Positions 20,415 through 43,331 of a stretch of DNA of 64,000 bases are shown here, piece after piece (position 1 is the stretch's first letter; the number at the start of each line of letters is the position of its first letter). The stretch spans positions 62,001 to 126,000 of the IMG/VR virus record IMGVR_UViG_3300035703_000010; one strand, written 5' to 3'. The notes under the pieces were generated by a model that saw nothing but the letters and a program-made list of their open reading frames with translations, searched no databases and was not told the origin of the DNA. A program made the translations under genes and the position numbers.

Positions 20415-20909
20415 ATGGCTGGTCAAGGAAAATATACTGTTTATGCTCCGCCTAGTGGCGAAAAAAATACTTTGCTAGCGAAGTTATTTCCAAAATCTCC
20501 AACTGCACAGTTTGTTGGAAAAGAAGAAGATTACAGAAAAATCGTTCTTGAACAAGGAAATTTGAATCTAAAGAATGGATTACAAATGGGAGATTCATAC
20601 TTTGGAACTGGTGTGAATATGGATTTTGTAGGCTCACCGGACATCAGCAAAGGTGCTGATGGAATGTGGACAAGATCAGGAGATCCTGCAAATTCATACA
20701 CACCAGACATAACATCTCCAGGACCAGGAAAGACGGACGGGTCTGATAAAAATGAAGATCCTGGAATAAAAGCAGTCGATTTAAAGCCTACCTATGTCCC
20801 AGGTGGTCCCAATACTGGAACAAGAAATCCAGCTGAGTTTGCAAAAAAGATTGCTGCGCAAACGTTGGGTGTCGCTAATAAGATGGGATCTTCAGATTCT
20901 AACGGTTGA
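20415..20909 (+). CDS. Hypothetical protein (Gly/Pro-rich)
   Basis: Strong SD AAGGAGG. 164 aa directly upstream of the scaffold gene. Confidence 0.7.
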   Translation: MAGQGKYTVYAPPSGEKNTLLAKLFPKSPTAQFVGKEEDYRKIVLEQGNLNLKNGLQMGDSYFGTGVNMDFVGSPDISKGADGMWTRSGDPANSYTPDITSPGPGKTDGSDKNEDPGIKAVDLKPTYVPGGPNTGTRNPAEFAKKIAAQTLGVANKMGSSDSNG

Positions 20910-20926
20910 TTTTCGGAGATAATAAA

Positions 20927-22876
20927 ATGTCAAAAGAACTATACGAAGAAGCCATTGCTGATTTAAAGAAAGTAAAAGAAGTTGCAGAGGATAATGCAAA
21001 GCGTGCTATCGTTGAAGCAGTAGCTCCTCGTATAAGAGAATTGATTGAAAAAGAATTGTTAGGTGAATCCGTCGATGACCCAGAGGAAGGTATGGGCTGT
21101 GAATCTGAAGAAAAAGACGATGAGATTCTAACCGATAAGAAACCAGCTGATTCTGAACATGGTGATTCGGAGCATGACGACAAAGATTCATCTTCTTCAA
21201 AAGATGAAATGATGGGTGTAGATGAAATGACAAATGAAAATGAAGTTGTAGAAAACGTCATTTCTCCATCCATCGTTGAAGAAAAAGATGAAGTCGAAGA
21301 AAAATTACTCTACATTGAAACAATGTTGGACAAACTTTCAACATCACATATCTTTGAATCAAAGACATTTGGTCTAAGTTTAATCAGATTAAATGAGATG
21401 GTTGAAGCAATATATGGATATATCCAAGAATGTGTAGAGGATCCTAATGTCAGATTGGGATATGGATTAAAATTAAGAAAGTGTTTAAATAAACTTGAAA
21501 AACTTCAGGAGACAAAAATGAATCGAGATCTTTTAAATGAAGAAGACGTTATGTTAACAATCACAGGACTCCCAGATGATCTTGATCTTGAGGGTCTTGG
21601 AGTCACTTTACAAACCGGTGAAGAAGGAGAAGAAGCTCCTGAAGGTGAAGAAGGTGGCGAAGAAGAAGCAGAAGGAGAAGAAGCTCCTGAAGGAGATGAG
21701 GGCGGCGAAGAAGAGCTTGACCTTGACCTTGGAGGAGAATCAGAAGGCGAAGAAGAAGCAGGGAAGAAAGAAGAATCTCTTCAACTTTCTGATGACATGA
21801 TCGTTGAAATCGACGAAGGCATGCTCCGCCGTGAAATTTCTCGTATGAAAACTCTTCGTGAAGCTCATGATGAAGCTCATGATGTTCAGGCATGGGGTCA
21901 TGGAGCTGGTGATGTTTCAAGCGAGGAAGATTTTGAAGCAGACGATTTAGGAGAACCTCTTGAATTAGACCTTTCTGAGGCTCTTGCTGAACTTGATGGT
22001 GCAGCAACTCAAGGAGCTGCAACAGAACTTGAAGATTATACAGCTGAAGCTAAACCATCTTTAGATAAAGAAGAAGTCGAAGAAATGTATGAAGAAGTCG
22101 ATGAAGAAGTCGATGAAGAAGTCGATGAAGCTTCATGCGATGAAGAAGATTCTCAACATGAAGTTGATGAAGAGCTTGAAGAAATGATGGGTCAGGCATA
22201 TGATGAATCTGACAAGCAGCATTCTTCTGCTTCTCAACCTAACAGACAAACAAGAGAATCAATTCGTTCTGAAATGGCTAAGGAGCTCAAGCTACAAGAG
22301 TCACTTCGCGGACGAGCTGCTCAATTAAAGAAGCTTTATGAATCTTCAAAGAAAGCTTCTTCAAAGGCTTCTACAATTCTTGAAAGAAAAGAAGCTTCTC
22401 ATAAGGAAGCTCAAGTCAAGAAAGCATATGCTGAAACAGCAGATCGTTACAATGCTTCTGTAACACGATTTAACAAACTTTCACAAACCTTAGAAGAAGG
22501 TTTAACAAAGAACGTTCGCTCAAATAGCGATGTAAACCCTGTCGCTAGCACAGGTTCTGATACGCTACGCAAGAAGTTGGCAGAAACGAATCTGCTCAAC
22601 GCAAAGCTTCTCTTTACGAATAAGCTTCTTCAAACAGAGTCGCTCACTGCTCGCCAAAAGGCACAGATAATTGAGCAACTTGATTCAGCTGAAACAATTC
22701 GTGAAGCTAAGCTTGTGTACGAGAGCCTCTCAAAGGCTTTAATGAAGACTCGTACAACTGTGACAGAAGGCCGAATCCTCGGATCATCTTCACAAGCAAC
22801 ACGTCCTGCTTCAACCCAAACACTCAACGAAGGCATTGAAGCAGAGCGTTGGGCAAGACTCGCAGGCATCAAGTGA
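20927..22876 (+). CDS. Prohead core scaffolding protein (T4 gp22-like position)
   Basis: Very acidic coiled coil directly upstream of the MCP. Starts MSKELYEEAIADLKKVKEVAEDNAK, ends LAETNLLNAKLLFTNKL...RWARLAGIK. SD GGAG before ATG 20927. Confidence 0.8.
   Translation: MSKELYEEAIADLKKVKEVAEDNAKRAIVEAVAPRIRELIEKELLGESVDDPEEGMGCESEEKDDEILTDKKPADSEHGDSEHDDKDSSSSKDEMMGVDEMTNENEVVENVISPSIVEEKDEVEEKLLYIETMLDKLSTSHIFESKTFGLSLIRLNEMVEAIYGYIQECVEDPNVRLGYGLKLRKCLNKLEKLQETKMNRDLLNEEDVMLTITGLPDDLDLEGLGVTLQTGEEGEEAPEGEEGGEEEAEGEEAPEGDEGGEEELDLDLGGESEGEEEAGKKEESLQLSDDMIVEIDEGMLRREISRMKTLREAHDEAHDVQAWGHGAGDVSSEEDFEADDLGEPLELDLSEALAELDGAATQGAATELEDYTAEAKPSLDKEEVEEMYEEVDEEVDEEVDEASCDEEDSQHEVDEELEEMMGQAYDESDKQHSSASQPNRQTRESIRSEMAKELKLQESLRGRAAQLKKLYESSKKASSKASTILERKEASHKEAQVKKAYAETADRYNASVTRFNKLSQTLEEGLTKNVRSNSDVNPVASTGSDTLRKKLAETNLLNAKLLFTNKLLQTESLTARQKAQIIEQLDSAETIREAKLVYESLSKALMKTRTTVTEGRILGSSSQATRPASTQTLNEGIEAERWARLAGIK
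22091..22126 (+). repeat. Tandem 12-bp coding repeat (GAAGAAGTCGAT)x3 encoding EEVD x3
   Basis: Read directly within the scaffold gene. Confidence 0.9.
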
Positions 22877-22932: not shown

Positions 22933-24825
22933 ATGAAGACTTTTACAATTGAACAACTTTCACAAGGCATTCGCGAAAAGCACGTCGGTGCCGAGCGTGC
23001 CCGTTTAACAGAAAAGTGGAGCCGCACAGGACTCCTCCGTGGCCTTGATGGTCAACGCCGCGAGATGATGGCACAACTTCTTGAAAACCAAGCAGCACAA
23101 GTCCTCAAGGAGAGCTCAGCTCTTTCTTCAGGCGGTGGAAACGTAACATCATCTGGACAAATCCAAGGCTTCTCTAACATCGCCTTCCCAATTGTCCGCC
23201 GAGTGTTCGGTGGCCTCGTCGCCAACGAGCTCGTTTCTATCCAACCAATGAGCCTTCCATCAGGTCTAATCTTCTACCTTGATTACACATATGGAACCAA
23301 CGTTGGTCAAGCAGCTGGACAAACCTCTGAGGCTACATACTCCAGAGGAACATCCATCTACAACAACCCAACCGGCCGCGGAGTCCAATCAGGATCTCTT
23401 GCAACTGGTGGTATGTACGACCTCGTTGGAACAGGTTACTCAAAGGTAACAGGTTCTCTTACAGCAGTCAACTTCGCTGCAGCTTCAGTTTACTCAGGAT
23501 CATGGGGCGGTGCAGATGGCTTAACATGGACAGACGGCTTAGTTCTTGGAACAGGAACAAGCTTCAGCGGTTCAAATGCTCGTTTAATGGACTTCGATAG
23601 CCAAGTTGAGACAGCACTCACAAACAACGATCTAGACGCACTCTTCGTCTATCTTCCAACAAGCGCATTAACCGGTGCTGATTTACTTGCAGTTGACCAA
23701 ATCGCTGTTTTCAGCGGCTTCGGTGCAAACGCAACAGCATGGGGAGATTCTTACCAAGGTGGAAGCGGCGTTCTCAACCTTCGTCGCCTCAACAAGCGTG
23801 GAACTCTTACAGGAACAGGAACATCATTGAAGTTCGTACCAGACGCACTCAATGGTAACTATGTCCAATTCGTTCTTAAGGGAGCAAACGGACTTTCTGC
23901 TCTCACATCAGCAACAGGTCGCGTTACCTTCGTCAAGTCTGATACAGTCTCTGCTCTTGGCGGAGACGGTGCAGGAGCCGGTGCAACACTCACAGTTCCT
24001 TCATTCGAATCTGATTTCGGAACGACACCATCTCCAGCAATCCCAGAGATTGACATCAAGATTGAGTCGCTCGCAATCACTGCAACAACCCGCAAGCTAC
24101 GTGCTCGCTGGTCACCAGAACTCGCACAAGACCTCAATGCATACCATTCAATGGATGCAGAGGTTGAGCTCACCTCAATCCTCTCAGAGCAAATCGCTCT
24201 TGAGATCGACCGCGAGATCCTCAATGACCTCGTTACACAAGCCAACGGCGCAAACTACTACTGGTCACGCGCTCCAGGCAAGTTCGTCAACAAGGTAACA
24301 GGAGCACCAGTTACTCTCGCATCTTCACTCTCTATCGGACCGGCCTTCACAGGTACAGTTCGCGAGTGGTACGAGACACTCGTTGAGACAATCATCGACG
24401 TTGCAAACACCATCCACCGCAAGACACTCCGCGGAAGTGCAAACTTCCTCGTCTGCGGTCCAGATGTTGCGACAGTCCTTGAATCATCTGTTCTCTACAA
24501 GCCAAAGTTCTCCATCGATGGTGAAGGACAAGTTGCTTCTCCATTCACAATCGGTGCAGAGGCAATCGGTTCACTCAGCAACCGCTTCACAGTCTACAAG
24601 GATCCTTACTTCGTTCGTAACAAGATCCTCGTCGGCTACAAGGGCGGCAGCTACCTCGAGACAGGCTACGTCTACGCACCATACGTTCCACTCATCGTGA
24701 CACCAACAATCTTCGCACCAGAAGACTTCACACCACGTAAGGGCGTGATGACTCGCTACGGTAAGAAGATGGTTCGCTCCGACTTCTTCGGAACAGTCAC
24801 TTGCTTGGACATGAACATCATCTGA
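22933..24825 (+). CDS. gp23: Major capsid protein (T4 gp23-like)
   Basis: FPIVRRVFGGLVANELVSIQPMSLPSGLIFYL, ATTRKLRARWSPELAQDLNAYHSMDAEVELTSILSEQIALEIDREIL, YAPYVPL, GVMTRYG. Confidence 0.97.
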   Translation: MKTFTIEQLSQGIREKHVGAERARLTEKWSRTGLLRGLDGQRREMMAQLLENQAAQVLKESSALSSGGGNVTSSGQIQGFSNIAFPIVRRVFGGLVANELVSIQPMSLPSGLIFYLDYTYGTNVGQAAGQTSEATYSRGTSIYNNPTGRGVQSGSLATGGMYDLVGTGYSKVTGSLTAVNFAAASVYSGSWGGADGLTWTDGLVLGTGTSFSGSNARLMDFDSQVETALTNNDLDALFVYLPTSALTGADLLAVDQIAVFSGFGANATAWGDSYQGGSGVLNLRRLNKRGTLTGTGTSLKFVPDALNGNYVQFVLKGANGLSALTSATGRVTFVKSDTVSALGGDGAGAGATLTVPSFESDFGTTPSPAIPEIDIKIESLAITATTRKLRARWSPELAQDLNAYHSMDAEVELTSILSEQIALEIDREILNDLVTQANGANYYWSRAPGKFVNKVTGAPVTLASSLSIGPAFTGTVREWYETLVETIIDVANTIHRKTLRGSANFLVCGPDVATVLESSVLYKPKFSIDGEGQVASPFTIGAEAIGSLSNRFTVYKDPYFVRNKILVGYKGGSYLETGYVYAPYVPLIVTPTIFAPEDFTPRKGVMTRYGKKMVRSDFFGTVTCLDMNII

Positions 24826-24851
24826 TAGTCGGAAACGACAATCTTTGATAG

Positions 24852-24886
24852 GAAAGGCCTTCGAAAGAAGGCCTTTCTTGTTTTTG
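24852..24886 (+). terminator. Rho-independent terminator after the MCP
   Basis: Perfect 11-bp stem GAAAGGCCTTC / GAAGGCCTTTC, GAAA loop, then TTGTTTTTG. Confidence 0.9.
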
Positions 24887-24983: not shown

Positions 24984-25316
24984 ATGAAGAATCTTCGAGA
25001 TATTGTTGAAGAAAAGCGTTTGCGTCAAATTATAAAAGAAGAAATAGAATCTTTGAAGTTAACAGAGCAGACAGACACTGAATTAAATCGTTTTGTGAAA
25101 GACTTTGAAAGCGTCATTAGAAGCAGTGATTTTAAATCTAAGATTAGACCTGCAATATTACATATTTTTTCTGATGATCCTAAAGATGCGAAGCCTATTG
25201 ATTTTCAAGCATTAGGACATGTGTTATTTGATTTGATGAAGAGCCCTAATGAATCAGACATCAACGATATATGCAATTTATTGAAAAACTTAGCAAGAGA
25301 GCGTAAGCGAAGATAA
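24984..25316 (+). CDS. Putative internal head protein
   Basis: Starts MKNLRDIVEEKRLRQIIKEEIESLKLTE, with the shared amphipathic L..II.EE motif. Confidence 0.55.
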   Translation: MKNLRDIVEEKRLRQIIKEEIESLKLTEQTDTELNRFVKDFESVIRSSDFKSKIRPAILHIFSDDPKDAKPIDFQALGHVLFDLMKSPNESDINDICNLLKNLARERKRR

Positions 25317-25352: not shown

Positions 25353-25679
25353 GTGAAACGTCGCAGAACGTATGGTCAAGTCAAATTAAAGAAAGATCTA
25401 TGCGAAATTTGTAGCTGTGATCGATCTGCTGCATTGAACATACATCATATTATTCCAAGATGCGATCCTCGATGTTCAAATGACAACCACAACCTCGCTG
25501 TCGTTTGTCACACGTGTCACGACCTAATCCATGCAGGCGAAATTACAATTATTGGCGTTTATTCTTCTACGGGAGGAAGAAAGCTAATGTGGTTCCGTGA
25601 AGGAGAAGATCCTCCATTAGACAAGGAGTTCTGGAAGGTCAAAGAAAATCCTTTAGTATTAAGACGTAGGAAACATTAA
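25353..25679 (+). CDS. HNH endonuclease
   Basis: CEIC...IHHIIPR...NDNHNLAVVCHTCHDLIH. GTG start. Confidence 0.85.
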   Translation: MKRRRTYGQVKLKKDLCEICSCDRSAALNIHHIIPRCDPRCSNDNHNLAVVCHTCHDLIHAGEITIIGVYSSTGGRKLMWFREGEDPPLDKEFWKVKENPLVLRRRKH

Positions 25680-25720
25680 TCTTTTTTATAATTTTTTTGT
25701 GAAGGAAATATAATTGTTCT

Positions 25721-27184
25721 ATGTCAACAAGAAAAAGTGATTTTCTAAAAAGAGTTACGATCTTTTCATGTCTGCTGGGAACTTTGGTTTATGGTTGCGT
25801 TAGACCAAATCCAAATAAATTAGCAGGAGATACGTCTGCTGTTTTTAATGATTGTCCGACACCCTCAGACGTCGTTACAACCGTTGATGTTGTAACAGGA
25901 ACAACAACTGCTGGTGTTGAATCATCATCTAGTAAGACGTCAGGAATTTCAGCTGTTTCTACTGGTTCTGGTGAACAGAAACAAGAAGAGACCGAACTTG
26001 ATAATAGAGAGCTAGACTATTCAGAAGCTCTTCGCACTGCCAGCTTTTTAATAGTCGGAGATTCTCCTACTCTTTTTGAGATTTATGAATTAGGAGATCT
26101 TCCGCTAGATCAAAAAAAGCAAAAGTATGAAGAGTTAATTGATTCTAAGTTATCTGATCCAAGATTTGCTGATACGTTAGTTGAATTTTTTAAGTACACT
26201 TTTAAGATGGGTGGTGCTGCAACGACACCAGGAGAACCGACAAGAGACACTGCACCGACTTTTGCAGCAAGGACTGTTTATGAAGAAAAAGATTGGAGAA
26301 ACATTTTAACTCAAGATTCTAATACATGTCCTACATACAATCCTATGACAAAAGTATTTTCAGACGGAGATTGCAATAATCTTCCTGCTGGAATGAAACA
26401 TTCGGGAATTCTCACAGACCCCGGCGCACAAAGCTTATATTACGGTAATTTATCTTTTAGAAGAAATCGTTTCTATCATGAAACTTTTCTGTGTTTGTCC
26501 GGTAACGAACAAGCCGGTGGAGAACCGACTGATCAGCCACCTGTTGTATCACCTTGTAGTGGAGTAGATCCTATACCCGGATATCAAAATAAATGGCCTG
26601 TTAATGAAATTGCAGGAGAATGCAACGGTGGTAGAGTAGATTTTCATGCGTATAACACGAGCAACGTTTGTGCAAATTGCCATGCAACGTGGAATCATCG
26701 TTCACCTTTATTCAGTCAATTCGATTCTAGAGGAATTTTTCAACCATTGACGCCATCTGGAGAATATTCTGTATTTGTTCCAGTTGAAGGATCTCCTAGA
26801 GCAAAAATGTCAGATTGGTTGTGCGTAGATCCTGTTAAATGCCCTAATGGAGGAAACAATTTTACTGCATGGAAAAAAACTATGAAAGTTGATGGAGTTG
26901 AAGTTCCTGCTTTTGCATCAACTATTAATGAGTTAGGATCTCAAATGGCTAAAGATGATGAAGTCATTGAATGTGCGGTCAAAAGAATTTGGAATTATTC
27001 CATGGGCCGTGCTGACATAACTGAGATAGGCGGTAGAAGTTGGGTAAACTTACCTGATCGAAAAGATAAAAATGAAGAATTAATGACTATGAGCAAGTTA
27101 GTTTCTCAGTTTAAAGGAAATGGATACAACTTGAAGAAAGTTTTTAGAACAATTTTGGTATCGGATGACTTCACGAGGTTTTAA
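25721..27184 (+). CDS. Exported Cys-rich (lipo)protein with DUF1592/DUF1588/DUF1585-like domains and one CxxCH motif
   Basis: Signal peptide ending LVYG-C, Ser/Thr linker, ALRTASFLIVGDSPT...LSDPRF, HSGILTDP...RRNRF...TFLC, CANCH...PLFSQFDSRG, C-terminal ECAVKRIWNYSMGR...FKGNGYNLKKVFRTILVSDDF. Confidence 0.7.
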   Translation: MSTRKSDFLKRVTIFSCLLGTLVYGCVRPNPNKLAGDTSAVFNDCPTPSDVVTTVDVVTGTTTAGVESSSSKTSGISAVSTGSGEQKQEETELDNRELDYSEALRTASFLIVGDSPTLFEIYELGDLPLDQKKQKYEELIDSKLSDPRFADTLVEFFKYTFKMGGAATTPGEPTRDTAPTFAARTVYEEKDWRNILTQDSNTCPTYNPMTKVFSDGDCNNLPAGMKHSGILTDPGAQSLYYGNLSFRRNRFYHETFLCLSGNEQAGGEPTDQPPVVSPCSGVDPIPGYQNKWPVNEIAGECNGGRVDFHAYNTSNVCANCHATWNHRSPLFSQFDSRGIFQPLTPSGEYSVFVPVEGSPRAKMSDWLCVDPVKCPNGGNNFTAWKKTMKVDGVEVPAFASTINELGSQMAKDDEVIECAVKRIWNYSMGRADITEIGGRSWVNLPDRKDKNEELMTMSKLVSQFKGNGYNLKKVFRTILVSDDFTRF

Positions 27185-27185
27185 G

Positions 27186-28187
27186 ATGAAAATGCTGAAC
27201 AACAAATTTCTAAGTACATTAACGTTATTATTTATTGTTTCATGTGGTTCCGATGCTGCTGATATAAATGAAGGAGATTGTGAACAGCAAAAACAAAGTT
27301 CTTCAACTTTGTCTTCTCAGTCTTCTTCTGTAACTTCTTCTGTAACTTCAGGCGGAGGTGAGAAACAAGATCAACCTGTTTCTACAGCAGGTGCTGGAGG
27401 ATCTTCTCAATTACCTTCATACGATGTACCAACTCCTGATGAAATATCTTCTAGATTGCATTCATGTCATAAACTTTCTTATTCTCAGCTTGGAAACTTC
27501 TTAAGAGCTCGAGGAGCAGCGATTCCGTTTGGTAGCGTTTCAGATGTTAGAACTACTCAAGTTTCAGTGTTCGGAATGACTCAAACATTAGGATCTATAT
27601 TCGGCGGAAGCGGAGCGTCATGTGAGATGGCTGTTACTGTAGCAAATGGAACAAACGATCCTATTTGCCAAGGAAATGAAGTTTGTTTTTGCAACCAAGA
27701 CGATAAGATGAATCAAGTTAATCGTAGCTGTCTAGACGTAGGAAATAACTCTCCTGATGCCGCAGATGGATATTGCGTCGCAAAACCTGCTACTGCAGGT
27801 TATTTGTACTTTACTGGTAAAGATGCATTAGGAGTTCCTAAATTAGATTCTAGATTAGGAGAGAAAGATGAACATACGACTGCATCTGCAATGAGGTTGA
27901 TGGATATTTTCATTCAATCAGCGCCACAAATTATTGCAAATATTAGCGATCCTTCTAAAGCTCCTGCATGTACATTAAATGGTAAAAACAAACCGATGTT
28001 TGCTGCTGATGGAAGTTGTATAGAGGAATCAGTAAGCTGTTTGATAGGAATTCCAGCTACTGAAGATCATATGCTTCTTTGTAATTTATTGGTTGGAAAA
28101 GCTAATTCAAATGATGCGACTGATGTAATGAAAAAAAGAAATATCGCAGTATCTGTTTTGTTGTCTGCAGCACATTCATGTCAATGA
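27186..28187 (+). CDS. Cys-rich lipoprotein of the same module
   Basis: SD GAGG before ATG 27186. MKMLNNKFLSTLTLLFIVS-C lipobox, Ser/Gly-rich linker (SSSVTSSVTSGGG...GAGGSS), many paired Cys. Confidence 0.7.
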   Translation: MKMLNNKFLSTLTLLFIVSCGSDAADINEGDCEQQKQSSSTLSSQSSSVTSSVTSGGGEKQDQPVSTAGAGGSSQLPSYDVPTPDEISSRLHSCHKLSYSQLGNFLRARGAAIPFGSVSDVRTTQVSVFGMTQTLGSIFGGSGASCEMAVTVANGTNDPICQGNEVCFCNQDDKMNQVNRSCLDVGNNSPDAADGYCVAKPATAGYLYFTGKDALGVPKLDSRLGEKDEHTTASAMRLMDIFIQSAPQIIANISDPSKAPACTLNGKNKPMFAADGSCIEESVSCLIGIPATEDHMLLCNLLVGKANSNDATDVMKKRNIAVSVLLSAAHSCQ

Positions 28188-28200
28188 AGGAAAATAAAAA

Positions 28201-29805
28201 ATGTCAAACTGGAAATTAAAAGATCTTCGTAATGATAGACGTAGAACATTCTTAAAAATGTGTACTGTCGCAGCTGCAGTCGCAGGAATAGAAAGAACAA
28301 AATTACTAAATTTCCTTGCTGATGAAGGCGGCTATGGTTTAGCAGAAGCAGCTGGATCTACTTATGGACGATCATTGCTTGTTCCTTCGCCAAATGGAGT
28401 TTATGCATGGTTCCAAGAATTGTGGCCTGTTGCTGATGTTGGTCTAAAAGCTTGTCAAAACGCTAATGTTCCTGGATTGTCTTCAAACTTTGGAGGAACA
28501 TCATCTTATCTTTACACGTCTCAAAGAGGATATAACCCAGCAAATGGATACAGAGGAACTTATACAACTGGTAAAGGAAATCAAATGCCATCTTTGCCGA
28601 TGGGCGTAAAATCTTGGGACGGAGGAGACAAACCTTTCTTTTATGGTCCTGATGCTCCATGGTTTGACCATGTTTCTGGAAAACCGAAATATCCTGTGAC
28701 AGCATTCATGTCAGGAAAAGATGAAACTCATACAGAATTTCCAATTTCTCACATGTCTTTATCTGGAAATTCAACTCTTCAAGCAGCATTAGCTTCATTA
28801 GGCGCAGCAGGATCTTCTGCAATAGTTCCTGTCTTAGGTATAGATCCAGTAAAATATGGTCGTGCCCCTGGAGCTCCTGAGGTTGCGACAGTTCCAAGTT
28901 CTTTAGGTATGATTGACTTGTTTAATAGCGCTGCAAGCCAATTTACATTATTGAATAAAACTGATCAAGAATTGTTTGAGACATATTACAAGGCTCTTGT
29001 AGGTTTGAGAAAGTCTTCAAATAAATCATCATGGATTCCACAGATGTCAATAACCAAGAATTCTGCTAGAATCATTGGGTTAAATTTTGCATCTCAACTT
29101 ACTCCAACATCTCAAGATTTGGTCGATTTTGGTATTCAAGAAATGGTTGACAATGTAACTTCTAATTCAAATTATATGACTGCTGCTCAAAGAGCCGGAA
29201 TAGAAGAATTTGGAAGGGTTTTAATTGTAGTTGCAAAAGCATTTACGCTAGGATTATCTAAAACTGCAATTGTAGCCTTATCTCCAGGTCCGACTAGCGA
29301 CACGACCTTCACGGATCCTCACGTTACATTTGATAATTCTACCTTATTAAACCAAGGAAGAAATACTACGAAACATTTAGGGAAGGTTCTAGATGGTTTC
29401 TATAACTATTTATCGCAACAGGTGGATCCTGAAAGCCCTTCTGAGAAGTTAGATAAAAGCACTGTCTTTGTTGCTTATGGAGACACTCCTCATACTCCGT
29501 TAGTAGGGTCTACATGGCCTGACGCAACTCCTGATGCTTGTAATTGGATGTATGTTATGGATCCTCGTGGTCATATAAAGAATGGATGGTTCGGCCATGT
29601 TTATGCTAATAAAGTTAATAATCGAAATGCAGTAGGGTTTAATCCTTTAACAGGTATGGATGATGTCACAAAGACGTCTGAGCAAGTTTCTGCTTTTGCT
29701 TCAACTGCAACAGTATTTTCAGTAGCAAACGGAGATTCTAATAAGGCATCTGAATATGGAAATTCTCCTAACATCGTTTCAGGATTGATTAATAGCATAA
29801 AATGA
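28201..29805 (+). CDS. Tat-exported DUF1501/DUF1552-like protein
   Basis: Twin-arginine motif DRRRTFLK plus hydrophobic stretch. C-terminal TDPH...LGKVLDGFYNYL...LDKSTVFVAYGDTPHTP...GHIKNGWFG resembles the DUF1501 C-terminus. SD AAGGA. Confidence 0.65.
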   Translation: MSNWKLKDLRNDRRRTFLKMCTVAAAVAGIERTKLLNFLADEGGYGLAEAAGSTYGRSLLVPSPNGVYAWFQELWPVADVGLKACQNANVPGLSSNFGGTSSYLYTSQRGYNPANGYRGTYTTGKGNQMPSLPMGVKSWDGGDKPFFYGPDAPWFDHVSGKPKYPVTAFMSGKDETHTEFPISHMSLSGNSTLQAALASLGAAGSSAIVPVLGIDPVKYGRAPGAPEVATVPSSLGMIDLFNSAASQFTLLNKTDQELFETYYKALVGLRKSSNKSSWIPQMSITKNSARIIGLNFASQLTPTSQDLVDFGIQEMVDNVTSNSNYMTAAQRAGIEEFGRVLIVVAKAFTLGLSKTAIVALSPGPTSDTTFTDPHVTFDNSTLLNQGRNTTKHLGKVLDGFYNYLSQQVDPESPSEKLDKSTVFVAYGDTPHTPLVGSTWPDATPDACNWMYVMDPRGHIKNGWFGHVYANKVNNRNAVGFNPLTGMDDVTKTSEQVSAFASTATVFSVANGDSNKASEYGNSPNIVSGLINSIK

Positions 29806-34377: not shown

Positions 34378-36747
34378 TCAGGCTGCGTTGTGGATTGCGA
34401 CGAAGATTCTATCTTCAGCAACTGTAGCTACCTTGAGTTGAAGCTGTGTTGTTGAAGAGATGATGTAGTCGTCTCCGTATGAGAGGCGAACGCCGTTGAG
34501 GTAAACGTCCATTGCAAGCTTCTTAGCAGCATCATCAGCGACTGAAGCAGCGCGGAGGGTACCGACTGAAGAGAATGCGATGTTTGTGTCAGCTGCGACG
34601 ACTCCTGGTAAGAAGGCATCTTGCTTGAAGTTACCACCTGAAGCTGCAGAGATGATCGCATCAACGAGTGATACACCAGCTCCGAATTGTGCTTCAAATT
34701 GTGCTTGGTCGCCATCGCTTGCTAACTTGAAGGATTCATCGCCACGTGCAACGAGCATGAGATCAACTCCTGCTGCAGACTTGAGTTCCATTGCACCAGC
34801 GCTGATTCCTGCATGGCCAAGTTCTGTTCCTTCTGCGTTTCCGAAGTAAGAACCAGACATCCAAGCCTTGACGAGTGCTGCACCATTGAGGTCTGCTGGC
34901 GTAGTACCGTCTGCATTGTGTGCAACTTGTGCGAAGATGAGCTCTCCTGCTCCACCGTCTTGTCCGACCACGAGGTCATAAGAAGCACCAGCACCCTTGC
35001 TGAGGACGATACCGGAATCAACTGATCCGTTAGATCCTGTTGCGAGGTAGATGAATGCATCCTTAACCTTCATGTTTTCGGTTTCAACGTAGGTGAATGC
35101 ACCCTTAACGAGGAGGTTTCCATCGACTTGAGCATTACCAGAAACACGAATGTCTCCTGTAACGTCGAGCTTGGATCCGTCGAATGTTAACTTGGCTTCA
35201 TCCTTGATTGAACCGTCTGAATCAACGATATAGAGGCGTTGTGCAACGTCGCCATCGATGCTGATCTTGTTTGAGGTCAAGTCTGCGTTGACGTCGAGGG
35301 CTGCTCCGTTGATAGCTGCACCTGCAGAGAATGTAGCTGCGCCGGTTACGCCGAGTGTTCCACCGACTGTTGCGTTGTTTGTAACGCCGAGTGATGAAAG
35401 TGTAGATGCACCAGCGGAGAGTGTGCTGGAGAGTGTTACTGCTCCTGTTACTCCGAGTGTGCTTCCGAGTTGAGCTGCGCCAAGAACTCCGAGTGTACCA
35501 GCAATGGATGTGTTACCTGTTCCGTCTGCAACGACGAACTTGTCTGTATCCATTGTTAATCCACCATTGAGTTGTGCTCCTCCTGCGACGGATAATGAAC
35601 CGGCTGTTGCAACGTTTCCGGTTCCGTCTTGTACGGAGAATGCACCGGAATCCATGGACAATCCACCGTTAAGTGTTGTTGCACCGGTTACGGTGAGTGT
35701 GCTTGCCATAGAAACGGCTTGAGCAAATCCAGCCATTCCTGCAACTTGAAGTGAACCAGAGAGTCCTGCTGGTCCGCTAGCGTAGATTCCGCCTGTGATT
35801 GACATTGCGGATCCGTCGAAGATGAGTTTGGATTCATCCTTGAGGGAACCGTCTGAGTCAACGATGTAGAGACGTTGTGCAACATCGCCATCAATCTTGA
35901 GTGCAGATGCTGAAACTACGTTGTTGACATCAAGGATGCCGTCGATTCTTGCAGAGCTTAACATGTGAACGCTGCCGGTGACTGCGAGTGTACCAACAAG
36001 TTCAGAGTTTCCTGCAACTGCGAGATCTGACATTGTGCTTAAGTCGCCCATGATTGCTGCATCTTCGGTGACTGTGAGGTCGCCTGTGATAGCAGCTCCA
36101 CCGGAGATTGAAGCTCCTCCTGCGGAAATTTCGAGGCCTGCTGATCCGCTAATTGCTGCAGCAAATTTTGCAATTCCTGCGACGTCTAATGAACCAGAGA
36201 GTCCTGCTGGACCGCTTGCATAAAGTCCACCTGTGATTGACATTGCAGAACCATCAAAAACGAGTTTTGATTCATCTTTGATTGAACCGTCTGAGTCAAC
36301 GATGTAGAGACGAGAAGCAACATCACCATCGATGCTGATTTTGTTTGCAGTTAAATCAGCATTGACATCGAGTGCTGCACCGCTGATGGAAGCGCCGTTT
36401 GCGAATGTAGCTGCTTGAGCAACTGCAAGTGAACCGGAAACTCCAACTGCGCCAGCAAAGTATGCTGCTGAATCGAAATCAGCAACTCCAGCGACGTCAA
36501 TTGCGCCTTGGAAGTTTGCTTTTGTTCCGTCCATGTGAACGGCTGTGTAGATTGCTGAAAGGTTTTGTGAACCAGCAAGGTCGTCGTACCAGTTTGTTTG
36601 ACCGAGTACGCGCTTGACCTGCGAACGAAGTGCGTCAAGGTCTCCTGCGAGTGTAGATCTTGAAGCTAATGATGAACCTGCTCCGAGTGCATCATTAAAA
36701 GAAAGCGAACCACTAATTTGTGCTTGCTGAACTTTAGTAAAAGCCAT
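34378..36747 (-). CDS. Tail fibre/whisker-like repetitive virion protein (about 789 aa)
   Basis: Start placed at ATG 36747 (SD AGGTGG). Gly/Ala/Ser/Thr beta-repeats, three DGDVAxRLYIVDSDGS modules, two GGLxMD...DGTGN repeats, C-terminal VYLNGVRL...DYII module. Codon usage like the MCP. Confidence 0.7.
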   Translation of the reverse strand: MAFTKVQQAQISGSLSFNDALGAGSSLASRSTLAGDLDALRSQVKRVLGQTNWYDDLAGSQNLSAIYTAVHMDGTKANFQGAIDVAGVADFDSAAYFAGAVGVSGSLAVAQAATFANGASISGAALDVNADLTANKISIDGDVASRLYIVDSDGSIKDESKLVFDGSAMSITGGLYASGPAGLSGSLDVAGIAKFAAAISGSAGLEISAGGASISGGAAITGDLTVTEDAAIMGDLSTMSDLAVAGNSELVGTLAVTGSVHMLSSARIDGILDVNNVVSASALKIDGDVAQRLYIVDSDGSLKDESKLIFDGSAMSITGGIYASGPAGLSGSLQVAGMAGFAQAVSMASTLTVTGATTLNGGLSMDSGAFSVQDGTGNVATAGSLSVAGGAQLNGGLTMDTDKFVVADGTGNTSIAGTLGVLGAAQLGSTLGVTGAVTLSSTLSAGASTLSSLGVTNNATVGGTLGVTGAATFSAGAAINGAALDVNADLTSNKISIDGDVAQRLYIVDSDGSIKDEAKLTFDGSKLDVTGDIRVSGNAQVDGNLLVKGAFTYVETENMKVKDAFIYLATGSNGSVDSGIVLSKGAGASYDLVVGQDGGAGELIFAQVAHNADGTTPADLNGAALVKAWMSGSYFGNAEGTELGHAGISAGAMELKSAAGVDLMLVARGDESFKLASDGDQAQFEAQFGAGVSLVDAIISAASGGNFKQDAFLPGVVAADTNIAFSSVGTLRAASVADDAAKKLAMDVYLNGVRLSYGDDYIISSTTQLQLKVATVAEDRIFVAIHNAA
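35171..36397 (-). repeat. Three dispersed internal repeats in the fibre gene
   Basis: Near-identical DNA blocks at about 35171-35325, 35753-35900 and 36191-36397 (e.g. GAACCGTCTGA(G/A)TCAACGAT). Confidence 0.85.
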
Positions 36748-36813
36748 GTTACCACCTAATTTAGTTATTTTTGCATAGTAATCAAGCACCACGCTTGATT
36801 TTCTACGCAATGA

Positions 36814-40280: not shown

Positions 40281-43200
40281 ATGGCTGAGCAAGTTTTTAG
40301 GTCTCCTAATTTTTTTGAGAGAGAAATAGAGTTAAAAGCACCACCAAGCGGAGGTCCTGTAGGCGTACCAGCTGGTGTAATCGGAATGTCAAATAAAGGA
40401 CCGGCTTTTGTACCGGTCACGGTTGCCAATTTTAATGAATTCGTTAGCGTGTTTGGAGACTTAGATCCTAAAAAGTTCGGTCCTTATGCCGTAAATGAGT
40501 TTTTAAAGAATAGAACAGCATTAACTTATATGAGAGTGTTAGGCGCAGGATCAAATAAAACTGCTACTGACATTTCTTCCACTGCATTAACTGGAAGAGT
40601 AAAAAATGCTGGGTTTAAGCTTGAAGGTAATTTAGCATCTCATGATGCTCAAGGTCGTCATGCTGGTGCAGTTCAGTTTTTAGTTGCAGATCATACCCTA
40701 CAAACTAACGAAGCGTATGGAATGCCCATGTTTACTGATAATGATTCACGTTCACAAACTAGCAACGTCAATCTAATCAGAGGAGTTGTCATGTTAGCAT
40801 CTGGTGCTAGAATGATAGTTCTCAATGGAAATGAAAATGTTCCACCTGCATTCGTAGGAGCTACTACGATTGATGACGCAGCTCAAGTAAAAAGTGGAAA
40901 ATTTAAGTTAGTTATTTCATCTGCATTAGGATCAACATTCGCATTTGATGATAAGCTACCTGGAATAAAGGTTTATACTGCATCCTTAAATCCTTCTAGC
41001 GACGATTATTTTGCTAAAGTATTAAATAGAGATCCTGAAAAGTTTGAGCAATACCAACATTTACTTCATTCTGATTTTGCAGTTGATGATGAAATTGCAA
41101 AAGTTGTTGATGATGATTACGTTGCAGTGTTGTCAGGATCTGCATCAACAAGCAATGTTTCAGGTGAACCAACTACTGAGTTTAGAAAAGCTTTTGGTGC
41201 CTTTGATACTAGATTTACTTCACCAAAGACTCCATCCTTCATCTCTCAACCATTCGGTTCTACTGAATACGATTTATTCCAAGTTGAATCATTAGATGAT
41301 GGTGCATATGCAAATAGCCTCTACAAGATCTCAATAACAAACTTAAAGGTTTCTGAGAATGAAGCATATGAGTATGGAACGTTTAACGTTCAAGTCCGCG
41401 ATTGGAATGACACAGATTTAAATCCTGCAGTTTTAGAAGAATTCGTCAACTGTTCTTTAGATCCTGATTCAGACAATTACATCGGAAAAGTTATAGGCGA
41501 TAGAAAAGTAACTTATGATTTTGATCAAGACATTCTTTCCGAAAGAAGAATCATCACGAGCGGCAAGTATGACAATGTGTCAAAATACATTAGAGTTATA
41601 ATTTCTCAAAATGTTGAAGATAAAAAAGTTCCAGCTGCCTCGTTGCCATTTGGATTCAGAGGGCCAGAATTACTAAAGACTAATGATACCTTGAAAGACG
41701 GAGAAATTGCAGCAACTGGAGCTGCTGCCTCATCATTAAAGAGATTAACCGGATTGTTTGCTTCTGATGCAGTCGGTTTCCTCTCACAATCAATATTACC
41801 ACCTGTCCCCTTTAGATTCAAGGTAACGAAAGGTCCGATGACAACACCCGCATGGGATGGTGATCCAGGACCACAAGAGGTTGCATCTCCTCAATTCTAT
41901 TGGGGCGTTAAGTTTGAAAGAAATGATTCACCATTAAATTCAAACATTTCTGAAGTAAAGAATAGCCTCTTAGAAAGCTATACGAAGTTTAGCGGAATCA
42001 AAAAGTTAGATGTTCTTGTAACTGGCTCAGGCGCGGATACATTTAACAACAACAAATTCTCATTATCTAATGTAGCATTTTCAGCAGGAACGATTGCTCA
42101 ATTAACAGGCACCGTTCGATCTCACATGAAAGAAGCTGCATACATCAGAAATGCAAAAGTTGATCCAACAACATACACGATTAATGATGCTGTATTAGGA
42201 GAAAGAATAACATTCGCTTCTCTATTATCAAATGGTGAACCATACGAGTTTAACAAGTATTCATCTTTTGCTAAGTTCACTACATTCATGCAAGGAGGAT
42301 TTGATGGATTAAACATCTTAGATCCTGCTGCATCAAGGATGAATGATAAAGCAACTTCTTTCGAAACTCCTCTTGGAGGAGCATCATCTACTTTCACATC
42401 TCCTGGAATGTTAACAAACCTTGCCGGAGTAGGAGTAGATAATAACGCGGTAAATTCATACATTACTGCAATTGATGTTATGACGGATCCCTTACAAGTC
42501 AACGTCAATTTATTGGCAATACCAGGAATTCGTGAAGATTACATAACGAACTACACGTCAAAGAAGATTAGAGACTATGGCTTAGGCATGTATATCATGG
42601 ATCTTCCAAACTACGATGACGATGACAATCGTATTTATGATGATTCAACAGCAAGAATCAACATTGAAAACACTGCAGCAACTTTTGAGGCAAGATCATT
42701 TGACAACAATTATGTTGCAACTTATTTCCCAAATGTTTACGTAAATGATGTAACTAACAATAGATACGTTAAAGTTCCATCATCTGTCGCTGCTTTAGGA
42801 GCGTTAGGGTTTAATGATAAAGTTGCATATCCGTGGTTCGCACCAGCAGGATTCAATAGAGCAGCTTTAGACTTCGTTAACAACGTAGAAGTTAGACTTA
42901 ACGTTTCTGATAGAGATAGACTCTATGATGCTAGAATTAATCCAATTGCAACTTTCCCAAGATTGGGATTTGTAATTTATGGACAAAAGACATTACAAAT
43001 AAGAAAATCAGCATTGGATAGAGTCAACGTTCGTAGATTACTTTTAGAAGTCAAGCGTTTAATCATCAACATAGCAAACAGAATTGTGTTCGAACAAAAC
43101 ACACCAGCTGTTCGTAACAAGTTTGTTGCAGACGCAATACTTCAATTAGGATTAATTCAAGCACAAGCTGGTATTGAAGCATACCAAGTTGTCATGAATG

Positions 43201-43331
43201 AAACGAACAATACGCAAGAAGATGTTGATCTAAATAGACTAAATGGAAGAATCGTCGTTGTTCCGACAAGAGCAATTGAATTTATTGCAATTGACTTCAT
43301 CGTAACAAATTCAGGCGTTCAGTTCGTTTGA
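40281..43331 (+). CDS. gp18: Tail sheath protein, paralog 1
   Basis: N-terminal SPNFFEREIEL...GPAFVPV. C-terminal PWFAPAGFNR...RINPIATF...YGQKTL...RVNVRRLL...PTRAIEFIAIDF. Confidence 0.92.
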   Translation: MAEQVFRSPNFFEREIELKAPPSGGPVGVPAGVIGMSNKGPAFVPVTVANFNEFVSVFGDLDPKKFGPYAVNEFLKNRTALTYMRVLGAGSNKTATDISSTALTGRVKNAGFKLEGNLASHDAQGRHAGAVQFLVADHTLQTNEAYGMPMFTDNDSRSQTSNVNLIRGVVMLASGARMIVLNGNENVPPAFVGATTIDDAAQVKSGKFKLVISSALGSTFAFDDKLPGIKVYTASLNPSSDDYFAKVLNRDPEKFEQYQHLLHSDFAVDDEIAKVVDDDYVAVLSGSASTSNVSGEPTTEFRKAFGAFDTRFTSPKTPSFISQPFGSTEYDLFQVESLDDGAYANSLYKISITNLKVSENEAYEYGTFNVQVRDWNDTDLNPAVLEEFVNCSLDPDSDNYIGKVIGDRKVTYDFDQDILSERRIITSGKYDNVSKYIRVIISQNVEDKKVPAASLPFGFRGPELLKTNDTLKDGEIAATGAAASSLKRLTGLFASDAVGFLSQSILPPVPFRFKVTKGPMTTPAWDGDPGPQEVASPQFYWGVKFERNDSPLNSNISEVKNSLLESYTKFSGIKKLDVLVTGSGADTFNNNKFSLSNVAFSAGTIAQLTGTVRSHMKEAAYIRNAKVDPTTYTINDAVLGERITFASLLSNGEPYEFNKYSSFAKFTTFMQGGFDGLNILDPAASRMNDKATSFETPLGGASSTFTSPGMLTNLAGVGVDNNAVNSYITAIDVMTDPLQVNVNLLAIPGIREDYITNYTSKKIRDYGLGMYIMDLPNYDDDDNRIYDDSTARINIENTAATFEARSFDNNYVATYFPNVYVNDVTNNRYVKVPSSVAALGALGFNDKVAYPWFAPAGFNRAALDFVNNVEVRLNVSDRDRLYDARINPIATFPRLGFVIYGQKTLQIRKSALDRVNVRRLLLEVKRLIINIANRIVFEQNTPAVRNKFVADAILQLGLIQAQAGIEAYQVVMNETNNTQEDVDLNRLNGRIVVVPTRAIEFIAIDFIVTNSGVQFV

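Follow-up and report, generated by a model that had tools for sequence, protein, structure and literature searches.

Our analysis shows that large T4-like phages from freshwater lakes carry, beside their capsid gene, an intact three-gene operon for predicted exported cell-envelope proteins, and that this operon was captured twice independently from myxobacteria of the class Polyangia. The DNA examined here, referred to as the window, is the 64,000-nucleotide stretch from position 62,001 to 126,000 of IMG/VR record IMGVR_UViG_3300035703_000010, a 204.6-kb T4-like phage contig in which the three co-directional genes (A, B and C) lie in the head module, between gp23 and the neck genes. An earlier sequence-only reading had described this block as a lipoprotein with a CxxCH motif, a second lipoprotein and a Tat-exported protein next to the capsid gene, and what it saw in the sequence is confirmed by our results. 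Its interpretation, that the phage keeps an ameliorated copy of a periplasmic or surface complex built from DUF1592-DUF1588-DUF1585-like and DUF1501/DUF1552-like proteins, is only partly supported. The coordinates of the features are collected in the table below.

Features of the trio and its surroundings, in positions of the window
Feature	Position (strand)	Description
gp23-type major capsid protein	22933-24825 (+)	Landmark beside which the module sits; Pfam Gp23 E=3e-77; GC3 outlier (0.47 against 0.18-0.27 for other window genes)
Intrinsic-terminator-like hairpin	24847-24882 (+)	16-bp stem plus T run directly after gp23; strong; separates the capsid transcript from the downstream block
110-aa ORF	24984-25316 (+)	First gene after the gp23 terminator; no family found; conserved at 80% in two related phage loci
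HNH homing-type endonuclease	25353-25679 (+)	Immediately upstream of the trio; PHROG 144 E=5e-9; Pfam HNH 19.4 bits, below the 21.4 cut-off; present in most related phages, including those without the trio
Promoter-like motif	25684-25693 (+)	TTTTATAATT, about 30 nt upstream of the A start; the same motif sits about 30-37 nt upstream of the portal and p164 head-gene starts; function inferred
Gene A	25721-27184 (+)	487 aa; lipobox-like L-V-Y-G-C ending at Cys26 (25784-25798); Ser/Thr/Gly linker of about 60 aa; helical domain with a single CxxCH motif (CANCH, residues 317-321, 26669-26683) followed by N325-H326 and four further invariant Cys; many Cys; distant PSCyt2/PSCyt3/PSD2 relative
Gene B	27165-28187 (+), probable true start 27186	340 aa; I-V-S-C with Cys27 counted from 27165 (27243-27245); Ser/Thr/Gly-type linker (Ser/Thr); many Cys; conserved Cys-containing domain; extra Cys-rich insert of about 90 aa (about 27525-27791) found only in the phage and freshwater 'long form'; no Pfam, PHROG or NCBIfam family
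Gene C	28201-29805 (+)	534 aa; twin-arginine (Tat) signal RRRTFLK (28237-28257); conserved L-A-E-A possible cleavage site near residue 50; invariant polar motifs ETHT (175-178), DPH (372-374), GDTPH (427-431), WPD (439-441) and N448
257-aa phage ORF	29835-30608 (+)	phrog_4301; follows C here and in several related phages; marks the return to ordinary phage genes

Each of the three genes has hundreds of homologues at E-values down to 0, and comparison with orthologues suggests that B really starts at Met8, 1 nt after the A stop. The assignment of the export signals rests on motifs and conservation. In A, the Cys column that ends the lipobox holds in 18 of 19 phage and 55 of 57 cellular homologues, while C317, C320 and H321 of the CxxCH motif are invariant in all 77 homologues checked. 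In C, R14, R15 and F17 are invariant in 33 sequences, the NCBIfam model TAT_signal_seq scores 16.1 bits against a cut-off of 16.7, and Pfam TAT_signal hits 16 of 33 family members at the lax threshold of E<=1, with a best value of 2e-4. Apart from the lipobox Cys, for which the counts are those given above, every candidate functional residue is kept in all of the phage copies checked, namely CxxCH, N325 and H326 of A and RR, H177, T178, D372, H374, D428, T429, D441 and N448 of C. Upstream of A, the promoter-like motif is only mildly enriched (5 copies against 1.68 expected, with 2 of 100 shuffles reaching 5), although a T-rich tract plus a TATAAT/TATTAT element is kept at this position in related phages.

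The family assignments proposed by the sequence-only reading hold only in part. A resembles the PSCyt/PSD families, but the window protein is below every Pfam cut-off (DUF1585 20.8 against 25.8; DUF1549 17.6 against 29.8), so that it is best described as a marginal PSCyt2/PSCyt3/PSD2 (DUF1549/1588/1585) relative; its relatives just pass for DUF1549 and DUF1588, and no match to DUF1592, DUF1587 or DUF1595 was seen. The assignment of C to DUF1501 or DUF1552 is not supported by sequence, since neither family was matched in any of the 43 family members scanned and two profile searches did not reach those families; C, like B, matches no Pfam family. What remains is weak fold evidence. The AF2 model of C is confident (pLDDT 79.7, pTM 0.80) with no close solved analogue, and most of the top 50 Foldseek matches in the PDB, including the best, are alkaline-phosphatase-superfamily enzymes (sulfatases, autotaxin and phosphoglycerate mutase), while the top match in BFVD is a DUF1501 protein. 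However, none of these matches is significant (best E=0.11 against the PDB and 0.04 against BFVD; TM 0.1-0.29).

The same A-B-C order occurs in 66 of 66 matching genome loci, and every locus with an informative name belongs to Myxococcota, class Polyangia, with a GC content of 57-74% and no gp23 nearby. The sequence-only reading had placed such operons in both Myxococcota and Planctomycetota, which was wrong in scope for this particular trio, as it was found only in Polyangia and not in Planctomycetota. The closest cellular copies (C 76%, A 65-70% and B 56-62% identical) lie between glmS/clpB and GH35/antiporter genes on contigs of 88-261 kb from lakes. In our tree, twenty phage C proteins form one clade (SH-aLRT 98-99) nested inside cellular diversity, among freshwater Polyangiaceae copies. 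A second type of trio, only 33-38% identical, is carried by a related phage (locus L126) and by loci L176 and L177, and it falls in the other deep cellular clade (100 support); in L126 it lies upstream of the HNH gene instead of downstream. For each type, A, B and C share the same nearest cellular loci, so the operon moved as a unit.

The trio is a stable, yet accessory, part of these phages. At least 35 type-1 contigs and 3 type-2 contigs exist in IMG/VR, and those type-1 loci that reach back to gp23 share the synteny gp23-(HNH)-A-B-C, whereas close gp23 relatives (84% and 79% identical) lack the trio. The GC3 of the three genes (0.20-0.24) equals the phage background, in contrast to 0.77-0.88 in the closest cellular copies, and the proposal that the phage keeps an intact, ameliorated copy of a cellular extracytoplasmic three-gene module is supported, the amelioration being complete. 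The dN/dS values of about 0.06-0.14 are at or below the 0.155 of gp23, although they are approximate because dS is saturated. The suggestion that the module is undescribed in phages is also supported: we found no PHROG family, no tblastn match in 50,697 GenBank phage records and no paper in the library searched.

Our results suggest that the block is a host-derived, still functional three-gene envelope operon carried by the phage as an auxiliary module that rebuilds the periplasmic complex of the host, a reading that we hold with moderate confidence as a whole. In this view, an ancestor of this freshwater T4-like phage clade captured the whole operon from a planktonic lake Polyangiaceae lineage, which is therefore the probable host, while a sister phage lineage separately captured a different paralogue of an operon that is fixed in Polyangia and often present in several paralogous copies per genome. 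During infection, the trio would be transcribed from its own promoter-like element downstream of the gp23 terminator. A and B would be exported by Sec, lipidated by Lgt/Lsp and anchored in the envelope, with A receiving one covalently bound haem c from the host maturation system, whereas C would fold in the cytoplasm, probably with metal, and be exported by Tat. The signals imply use of host Sec/Lgt, Tat and cytochrome c maturation, as the sequence-only reading had proposed, for the last only as a possibility. The rebuilt complex could then sustain or boost an envelope activity that the phage needs once host gene expression declines, which is the same logic as for other auxiliary metabolic genes. 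The most likely chemistry, which is weakly supported, is that C is a divergent alkaline-phosphatase-superfamily metalloenzyme that hydrolyses or transfers a phospho- or sulfo-ester group on an extracytoplasmic substrate, with the haem lipoprotein A as its redox or targeting partner and B as a scaffold.

The conserved operon, its two captures as a unit, its synteny, its amelioration and the purifying selection on it are results of the sequence comparisons, while activity, haem binding, lipidation, Tat export, complex formation, promoter function and timing of expression are all inferred. Accordingly, we are nearly certain of the cell-to-phage capture of a real operon, we consider envelope localization by the three export routes to be likely and retention of the native activity to be probable, but ester-processing chemistry remains doubtful. 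A concern about the probable host is that the phage has 36.5% GC over the window while the presumed donors have 63-71%, an unusually large phage-host gap, so donor and present host may differ. In addition, the cellular gene neighborhoods gave no pathway clue and none shows phosphate-regulon genes. The redox, nutrient scavenging and superinfection exclusion roles put forward by the sequence-only reading remain hypotheses.

Of the alternate explanations, superinfection exclusion or receptor masking deserves the most attention, although we consider it unlikely. The exported lipoproteins and enzyme could alter or cover a surface glycan, lipid or receptor of the infected cell so that further phages, or released progeny, would not adsorb to it. 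Two lipoproteins plus an exported enzyme suit the envelope, phage lipoproteins such as T5 Llp and Cor block receptors, alkaline-phosphatase-superfamily enzymes include lipid A and glycan modifiers, and the long form has the extra Cys-rich insert in B. However, phage proteins that stay 56-76% identical to chromosomal orthologues and keep the conserved residues fit the native activity better than a new blocking role, the cellular operon is a fixed feature of Polyangia genomes with no sign of prophage linkage, and nothing ties it to a receptor.

It is even less likely that the trio is neutral cargo moved between phages by the neighboring homing endonucleases with no benefit to the phage. HNH and NUMOD3-type endonuclease genes do flank the insertion sites and presence varies among close relatives, yet strong purifying selection acts on all three genes over divergences where dS is saturated, codon amelioration is complete, the same operon type was captured twice, and all three genes are intact in every full-length copy examined. 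The position in the head module and the promoter-like motif shared with head genes could point to capsid decoration or assembly factors, but this is very improbable because all three proteins carry conserved export signals that would remove them from the cytoplasm where heads assemble, the orthologues are chromosomal genes of bacteria with no phage context, there is no PHROG match, and the close relatives mentioned above, including that with gp23 84% identical, lack the genes. An assembly or binning artefact, in which a host fragment is wrongly joined to a phage contig, had been named beforehand as a result that would overturn the observation, and several near relatives are indeed filed in public databases as bacterial MAG proteins. 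This possibility is refuted by the at least 35 independent IMG/VR contigs from many samples, of which those reaching back to gp23 have phage genes on both sides of the trio, and by a GC3 that differs by about 0.6 from that of cellular copies.

Among known systems, Kamneva et al. 2012 (PMC3542564) described PSCyt1/PSCyt2/PSD1 cytochrome-motif proteins paired with Tat-signal DUF1501 proteins in Planctomycetes and Verrucomicrobia, in conserved modules of unknown function. As in our trio, a large exported protein with a CxxCH motif and PSCyt-type regions lies next to a Tat-signal protein of about 450-530 aa, the gene pairing is fixed, genomes hold several paralogous copies, relatives of A pass the Pfam PSCyt2 cut-off, and the best viral structural match of C is a DUF1501 protein. 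In contrast, C gives no DUF1501 HMM match, A is short (390-500 aa), predicted to be lipid-anchored and lacks PSCyt1 and PSD1, a third gene (B) is always present, and the range is Polyangia plus their phages rather than PVC bacteria. In another system, DUF1587/1592/1595/1588/1585 proteins are paired with DUF1552 (HXXSHH) proteins; relatives of A match PSCyt3/DUF1588 around the CxxCH motif and PSD2/DUF1585 at the C terminus, and the partner carries a Tat signal, however C has no DUF1552 HMM match and no HXXSHH motif, its motifs being ETHT, DPH and GDTPH/K. The DUF1800-DUF1501 operons of Proteobacteria (PMC5122149) are likewise a two-gene exported module of unknown function that moves by horizontal transfer as a unit, and the Minicystis A protein gives a faint DUF1800 match, but this match (15.4 bits) is far below the 26.1 cut-off, the gene number and taxa differ, and there is no link to chitin synthase. 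Comparison of C with arylsulfatases, NPP/autotaxin and cofactor-independent phosphoglycerate mutase shows conserved Asp/His pairs spaced like the metal ligands of the alkaline-phosphatase superfamily, a residue mapping that is our inference, yet the PDB matches stay at E>=0.11 and TM<=0.25, no nucleophile motif such as CxPxR is present, and the position expected for the first metal-binding Asp is Asn in type 1 and Asp in type 2. Phage auxiliary genes for periplasmic nutrient capture, such as cyanophage pstS and phoA, are also host-derived genes for exported proteins that are kept by T4-like aquatic phages under purifying selection, with the presumed role of sustaining a host function during infection; the module described here differs from them in lacking any phosphate-regulon context in its cellular neighborhoods and in being a complete three-gene operon that, judging from its signals, needs three export or maturation routes.

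The window is the structural module of a T4-like myovirus, which belongs to IMG/VR contig UViG_3300035703_000010 (204,651 bp), and in order it encodes a gp46/47-type nuclease, the large terminase, the gp20 portal, an S77 prohead protease, an acidic scaffold protein, the gp23 capsid protein, an M15 endolysin, gp13- and gp15-type neck and tail proteins, and tail sheath genes. A strong terminator follows gp23, after which come a 110-aa ORF, an HNH endonuclease and then the genes A, B and C. The protein in the scaffold position (656 aa) is extremely acidic, with long Glu/Gly/Asp repeats and no family match, and a spurious 139-aa ORF lies on its opposite strand. The three tandem tail-sheath paralogues, of 1016, 1016 and 1039 aa, all match phrog_23, the first two being 34% identical over their full length; three sheath-type genes in a row is unusual for a T4-like phage. 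A large homing/HNH endonuclease gene (phrog_3339, E=1e-74) lies directly after the third of them. Inside the structural module a GC-rich (about 0.47) 810-aa ORF on the opposite strand has weak bactofilin-like (beta-helix) and phrog_697 'structural protein' matches and is conserved in the related phage L002.

Coordinates of the features discussed, in the window and in two comparison loci (L126, the contig of a related phage with a second type of trio; L001, a locus with the longer operon)
Sequence	Coordinates	Strand	Feature
Window	20906-22876		Acidic protein in the scaffold position
Window	22933-24825		gp23 capsid protein
Window	24847-24882		Strong terminator after gp23
Window	25721-27184		Gene A
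Window	27165-28187		Gene B (probable start 27186)
Window	28201-29805		Gene C
Window	34378-36810	-	810-aa ORF
Window	40281-43331	+	Tail-sheath paralogue (first)
Window	43389-46439	+	Tail-sheath paralogue (second)
Window	46578-49697	+	Tail-sheath paralogue (third)
Window	49661-51370	-	Homing/HNH endonuclease
L126	11006-12439 and 16463-17068		NUMOD3-motif ORF (homing-endonuclease type) and cytidylyltransferase-like ORF flanking the trio
L001	6769-8019		Fourth gene of the Polyangia operon
L001	5022-6512	-	Kelch gene

The observation made in the sequence-only reading, three neighbouring genes whose products all carry export signals, is confirmed, and the signals are conserved. A has a lipobox, L-V-Y-G-C26, in which the Cys column is kept in 18 of 19 phage and 55 of 57 cellular sequences, followed by a low-complexity Ser/Thr/Gly linker (residues 1-87 are disordered in the AF2 model) and a helical domain. 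B has a canonical lipobox, I-V-S-C27, and a Cys-containing domain; lipoboxes are found in 5 of 6 aligned B orthologues, the ORF start of the sixth being truncated. A strict regular expression applied to automatically chosen starts found fewer lipoboxes, which reflects start-codon miscalls. A and B thus have the sequence features of bacterial lipoproteins, although their lipidation by Lgt/Lsp is inferred from motif and conservation alone. In A, C317-x-x-C320-H321, N325, H326 and four more Cys do not vary, or hardly vary, across 77 homologues (19 phage type-1, 1 phage type-2 and 57 cellular sequences), and the haem-attachment motif itself, C317-A-N-C320-H321, is invariant in a protein with a Sec-type lipoprotein signal; that haem is covalently bound there is a prediction from the motif. 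C has RRRTFLK at residues 13-19, in agreement with a twin-arginine (Tat) signal, and R14, R15 and F17 are invariant in 33 sequences. A Tat motif is found in 22 of 25 phage and 64 of 67 cellular copies, and the ones lacking it are partial sequences or loci with incomplete matches, while TIGR01409 scores 16.1 bits against a cut-off of 16.7. Export of C by the Tat route is likewise inferred from sequence.

The interpretation offered in the sequence-only reading is supported only in part, since the family assignments it proposed, DUF1592-DUF1588-DUF1585-like for A and DUF1501/DUF1552-like for C, do not all hold. Window A falls below every Pfam cut-off. For PSCyt2 (DUF1549, PF07583; gathering cut-off 29.8 bits) it scores 17.6 bits, whereas the Minicystis orthologue scores 30.5 and A2, the A protein of L126, scores 29.9, both just above, with only profile positions of about 18-88 of 209 being matched. 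For PSCyt3 (DUF1588, PF07627; cut-off 27 bits, over the CxxCH region) window A has no hit and Minicystis A scores 18.8, below the cut-off, while L126 A2 scores 28.8, above it, covering profile positions 3-96 of 98. For PSD2 (DUF1585, PF07624; cut-off 25.8 bits, at the C terminus) window A scores 20.8 bits (E=3e-4), and many homologues carry a precomputed, mostly faint PF07624 hit. No match to DUF1592, DUF1595 or DUF1587 was seen at E<=0.1 in window A, Minicystis A or L126 A2. A is therefore a compact, marginal relative of the 'planctomycete cytochrome' proteins. Its AF2 model has no solved structural analogue (best Foldseek E against PDB of 2.2), and sequence and profile searches of PDB with A and with C found nothing.

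Pfam, NCBIfam and PHROG scans of B and C found nothing except the Tat signal of C. The DUF1501 model (PF07394) gave no hit at E<=1 in any of 33 members of the C family, nor at E<=0.01 in 10 distant lipoprotein-type relatives, and none of these proteins has a Pfam domain. DUF1552 (PF07586) likewise gave no hit, and its HXXSHH motif does not appear in alignments A1 or A3. Our attempts to bridge C to these families by other means were also without a link. An exhaustive profile search of 1.84 billion representatives returned 325 proteins, all of the C family itself, and a second-iteration profile search of 5.8 billion proteins returned 163 hits, again only the family itself, with none of the 120 listed carrying DUF1501 or DUF1552. 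Flanks of 67 Polyangia loci were scanned for Tat-signal ORFs in order to collect DUF1501/DUF1552 sequences for a profile-profile test, and none was found. The contexts of two distant relatives showed no A-type partner, only thioredoxin-fold neighbours that may be coincidental. By sequence, C is therefore not DUF1501 or DUF1552.

The AF2 model of C is confident (pLDDT 79.7, pTM 0.80) but has no significant solved analogue. Even so, most of its top 50 Foldseek PDB matches, including the best, are alkaline-phosphatase-superfamily enzymes (sulfatases, autotaxin, iPGM), at E=0.11-1.2 and TM 0.1-0.25. The top BFVD match is a DUF1501 protein of an uncultured phage, at E=0.04, probability 0.44 and TM 0.27-0.29 over 525 columns, which is suggestive but not significant. 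We read these matches as a weak hint that C could be a very divergent member of the alkaline-phosphatase superfamily. The invariant ETHT, DPH, GDTP(H/K) and WPD motifs, with H177/T178, D372/H374, D428 and D441, are candidate metal ligands by inference only. A protein annotated as 'DUF1501 domain-containing' (BFVD entry A0A6J5M742) already exists in an uncultured Caudovirales phage, so that genuine DUF1501 genes also occur in phages, although we found no paper that discusses this. Literature searches for functional work on these DUF families, or on their presence in phages, found only descriptive papers, and no paper in the library searched links any of these families to phages.

A scan of one genome per species found 66 loci encoding C relatives. 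Nearly all of those that reach far enough upstream have A and B directly upstream in the same order, at GC 57-74% and without phage genes. All informatively named records are Myxococcota of the class Polyangia: Polyangiaceae, Byssovorax, Minicystis, Chondromyces, Polyangium, Labilithrix and Kofleriaceae. Exact-protein look-ups for the loci L039 and L046 returned no record. All-against-all clustering of flank ORFs in the high-GC loci was too noisy, because spurious ORFs merged clusters, and was replaced by targeted tblastn. Most Polyangia operons have a fourth conserved gene upstream (about 400-425 aa, no Pfam; L001 and homologues in about 55 Polyangia loci), which overlaps the A start, and at least a dozen also have a divergently transcribed Kelch/Dicty_CTDC repeat gene. 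Both are missing from both phage types and from a freshwater 'long form' of the operon, which has an insert of about 90 aa in B plus inserts in C and occurs in lake MAGs from Rimov, Zurich, Tanganyika and Baikal. These lake copies are the closest to the phage (C 76%, A 65-70% and B 56-62% identical), and they lie in ordinary chromosomal context between glmS/clpB and GH35/antiporter genes, on contigs of 88-261 kb. In a maximum-likelihood tree, 20 phage C proteins form one clade (support 98-99) nested within the cellular sequences, next to these lake copies. The direction of transfer is therefore cell to phage.

At least 35 IMG/VR contigs carry the type-1 trio, as found with an alignment-based scan using alignment A1. 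In the 23 loci examined for flanks, those reaching back to gp23 keep gp23-(HNH)-A-B-C synteny, with locus GC of 37-46%, and phage genes lie on both sides in the contigs examined. None of 50,697 GenBank phage records has a match to A, C or C2 (the C protein of L126). Of 29 gp23-related loci that had enough downstream sequence to be scored, eight have a trio and 21 do not, and the 21 include relatives with 84% and 79% gp23 identity, so the trio is accessory. One relative, L126 (a 200-kb contig; gp23 83% identical), carries a different short-form trio, encoding A2 (388 aa), B2 (241 aa) and C2 (459 aa), which are only 33-38% identical to the window's proteins. This trio lies on the other side of the HNH gene, has phage-like GC3 of 0.29-0.38, and is flanked by a NUMOD3-motif ORF and a cytidylyltransferase-like ORF that are absent from the window. 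With two further contigs it falls in the other deep cellular clade, with 100 support. For each type, all three genes share the same nearest cellular loci; the whole operon was therefore captured as a unit on two separate occasions.

GC3 of the window trio is 0.20-0.24, the same as other window genes (0.18-0.27), while the closest cellular copies have 0.77-0.88. Among phages dN/dS is about 0.09 for A, 0.12 for B and 0.06 for C, against 0.155 for gp23, over divergences at which dS is saturated (above 1.5), and the trio's values are 0.06-0.14. All candidate functional residues are kept in every phage copy checked. The trio therefore satisfies what is expected of phage auxiliary genes of host origin, namely a cellular origin shown by phylogeny, a location inside a bona fide phage genome, and purifying selection. 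Chimeric assembly, a virion protein role and neutral cargo were considered as alternate explanations and rejected.

What the analysis shows is a host-derived, intact and selected operon whose three products carry conserved signals for lipoprotein sorting, haem c attachment and Tat export. How it would act is a matter of inference: the trio may be transcribed from its own element, its products would be exported and matured by host machinery, and the host-type periplasmic complex would be rebuilt to sustain an envelope activity during infection. A TTTTATAATT motif lies about 30 nt before A and also precedes the portal gene and a head gene, with 5 copies against 1.7 expected, whereas the T4 late-promoter consensus TATAAATA is not used here (1 copy against 4.9 expected). 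It is only a speculation that C acts as an ester-processing metalloenzyme with A as its haem partner, and the cellular neighbourhoods give no pathway clue.

A concern about the presumed host is that the GC gap between the phage (36.5% over the window) and the donors (63-71%) is very large. Two independent captures from Polyangia, and co-occurrence in the same lake samples, still make Polyangiaceae the most economical host. The capsid gene is a strong composition outlier (GC 0.51 and GC3 0.47, against GC3 0.18-0.27 for all other large genes), and its GC3 of 0.47-0.70 across the phage clade may be codon selection toward a high-GC host, with which it is compatible without proving it. Phages with gp23 63-95% identical to the window's (loci L096-L175) span locus GC from 0.34 to 0.66, and this single capsid lineage has therefore adapted to hosts or compositions of very different GC. 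With this caveat, the operon gives a gene-based host assignment, to freshwater planktonic Polyangiaceae, for an abundant, uncultured clade of roughly 200-kb T4-like lake phages that has no close cultured relative, the best gp23 match in GenBank phages being below 50% identity.

The analysis also defines a previously unnamed operon that occurs across many Polyangia lineages, often in several copies per genome. The closest cellular and phage copies differ by about 0.6 in GC3 while staying up to 76% identical in protein, which is a clean example of amelioration under selection. Convergent capture by phages is strong natural evidence that the activity of the operon matters during infection, and the double capture and strong selection make it of more interest than a single stray gene. 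The phage versions are the minimal unit, A-B-C alone, without the fourth gene, which makes them a convenient starting point for biochemistry on the wider, long-unexplained family of cytochrome-motif plus Tat-enzyme modules. A bolder reading, which we regard as possible but less likely than not, is that the independent acquisition of paralogous copies by two related lineages of lake phages would mean that the complex performs a step that limits phage reproduction in Polyangia. It would then be a new kind of auxiliary module, a multi-subunit periplasmic haem-plus-metalloenzyme machine that needs Sec/Lol, cytochrome c maturation and Tat at once. The compact phage versions would in that case give the first experimental handle on the whole class of unexplained PSCyt/PSD with DUF1501/DUF1552 modules, which are abundant in Planctomycetota, Verrucomicrobiota and Myxococcota.

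The nearest described system is the PSCyt/PSD plus DUF1501 module of Planctomycetes and Verrucomicrobia, a conserved pair of a cytochrome-motif protein and a Tat-signal enzyme of unknown function (PMC3542564). The related DUF1800-DUF1501 pairs are transferred as units (PMC5122149). The trio works like these in layout, and such unexplained cytochrome-motif plus Tat-enzyme modules are its relatives. As a host-derived auxiliary operon it fails the sequence criteria for the enzyme partner, adds a third gene, and has a different host range.
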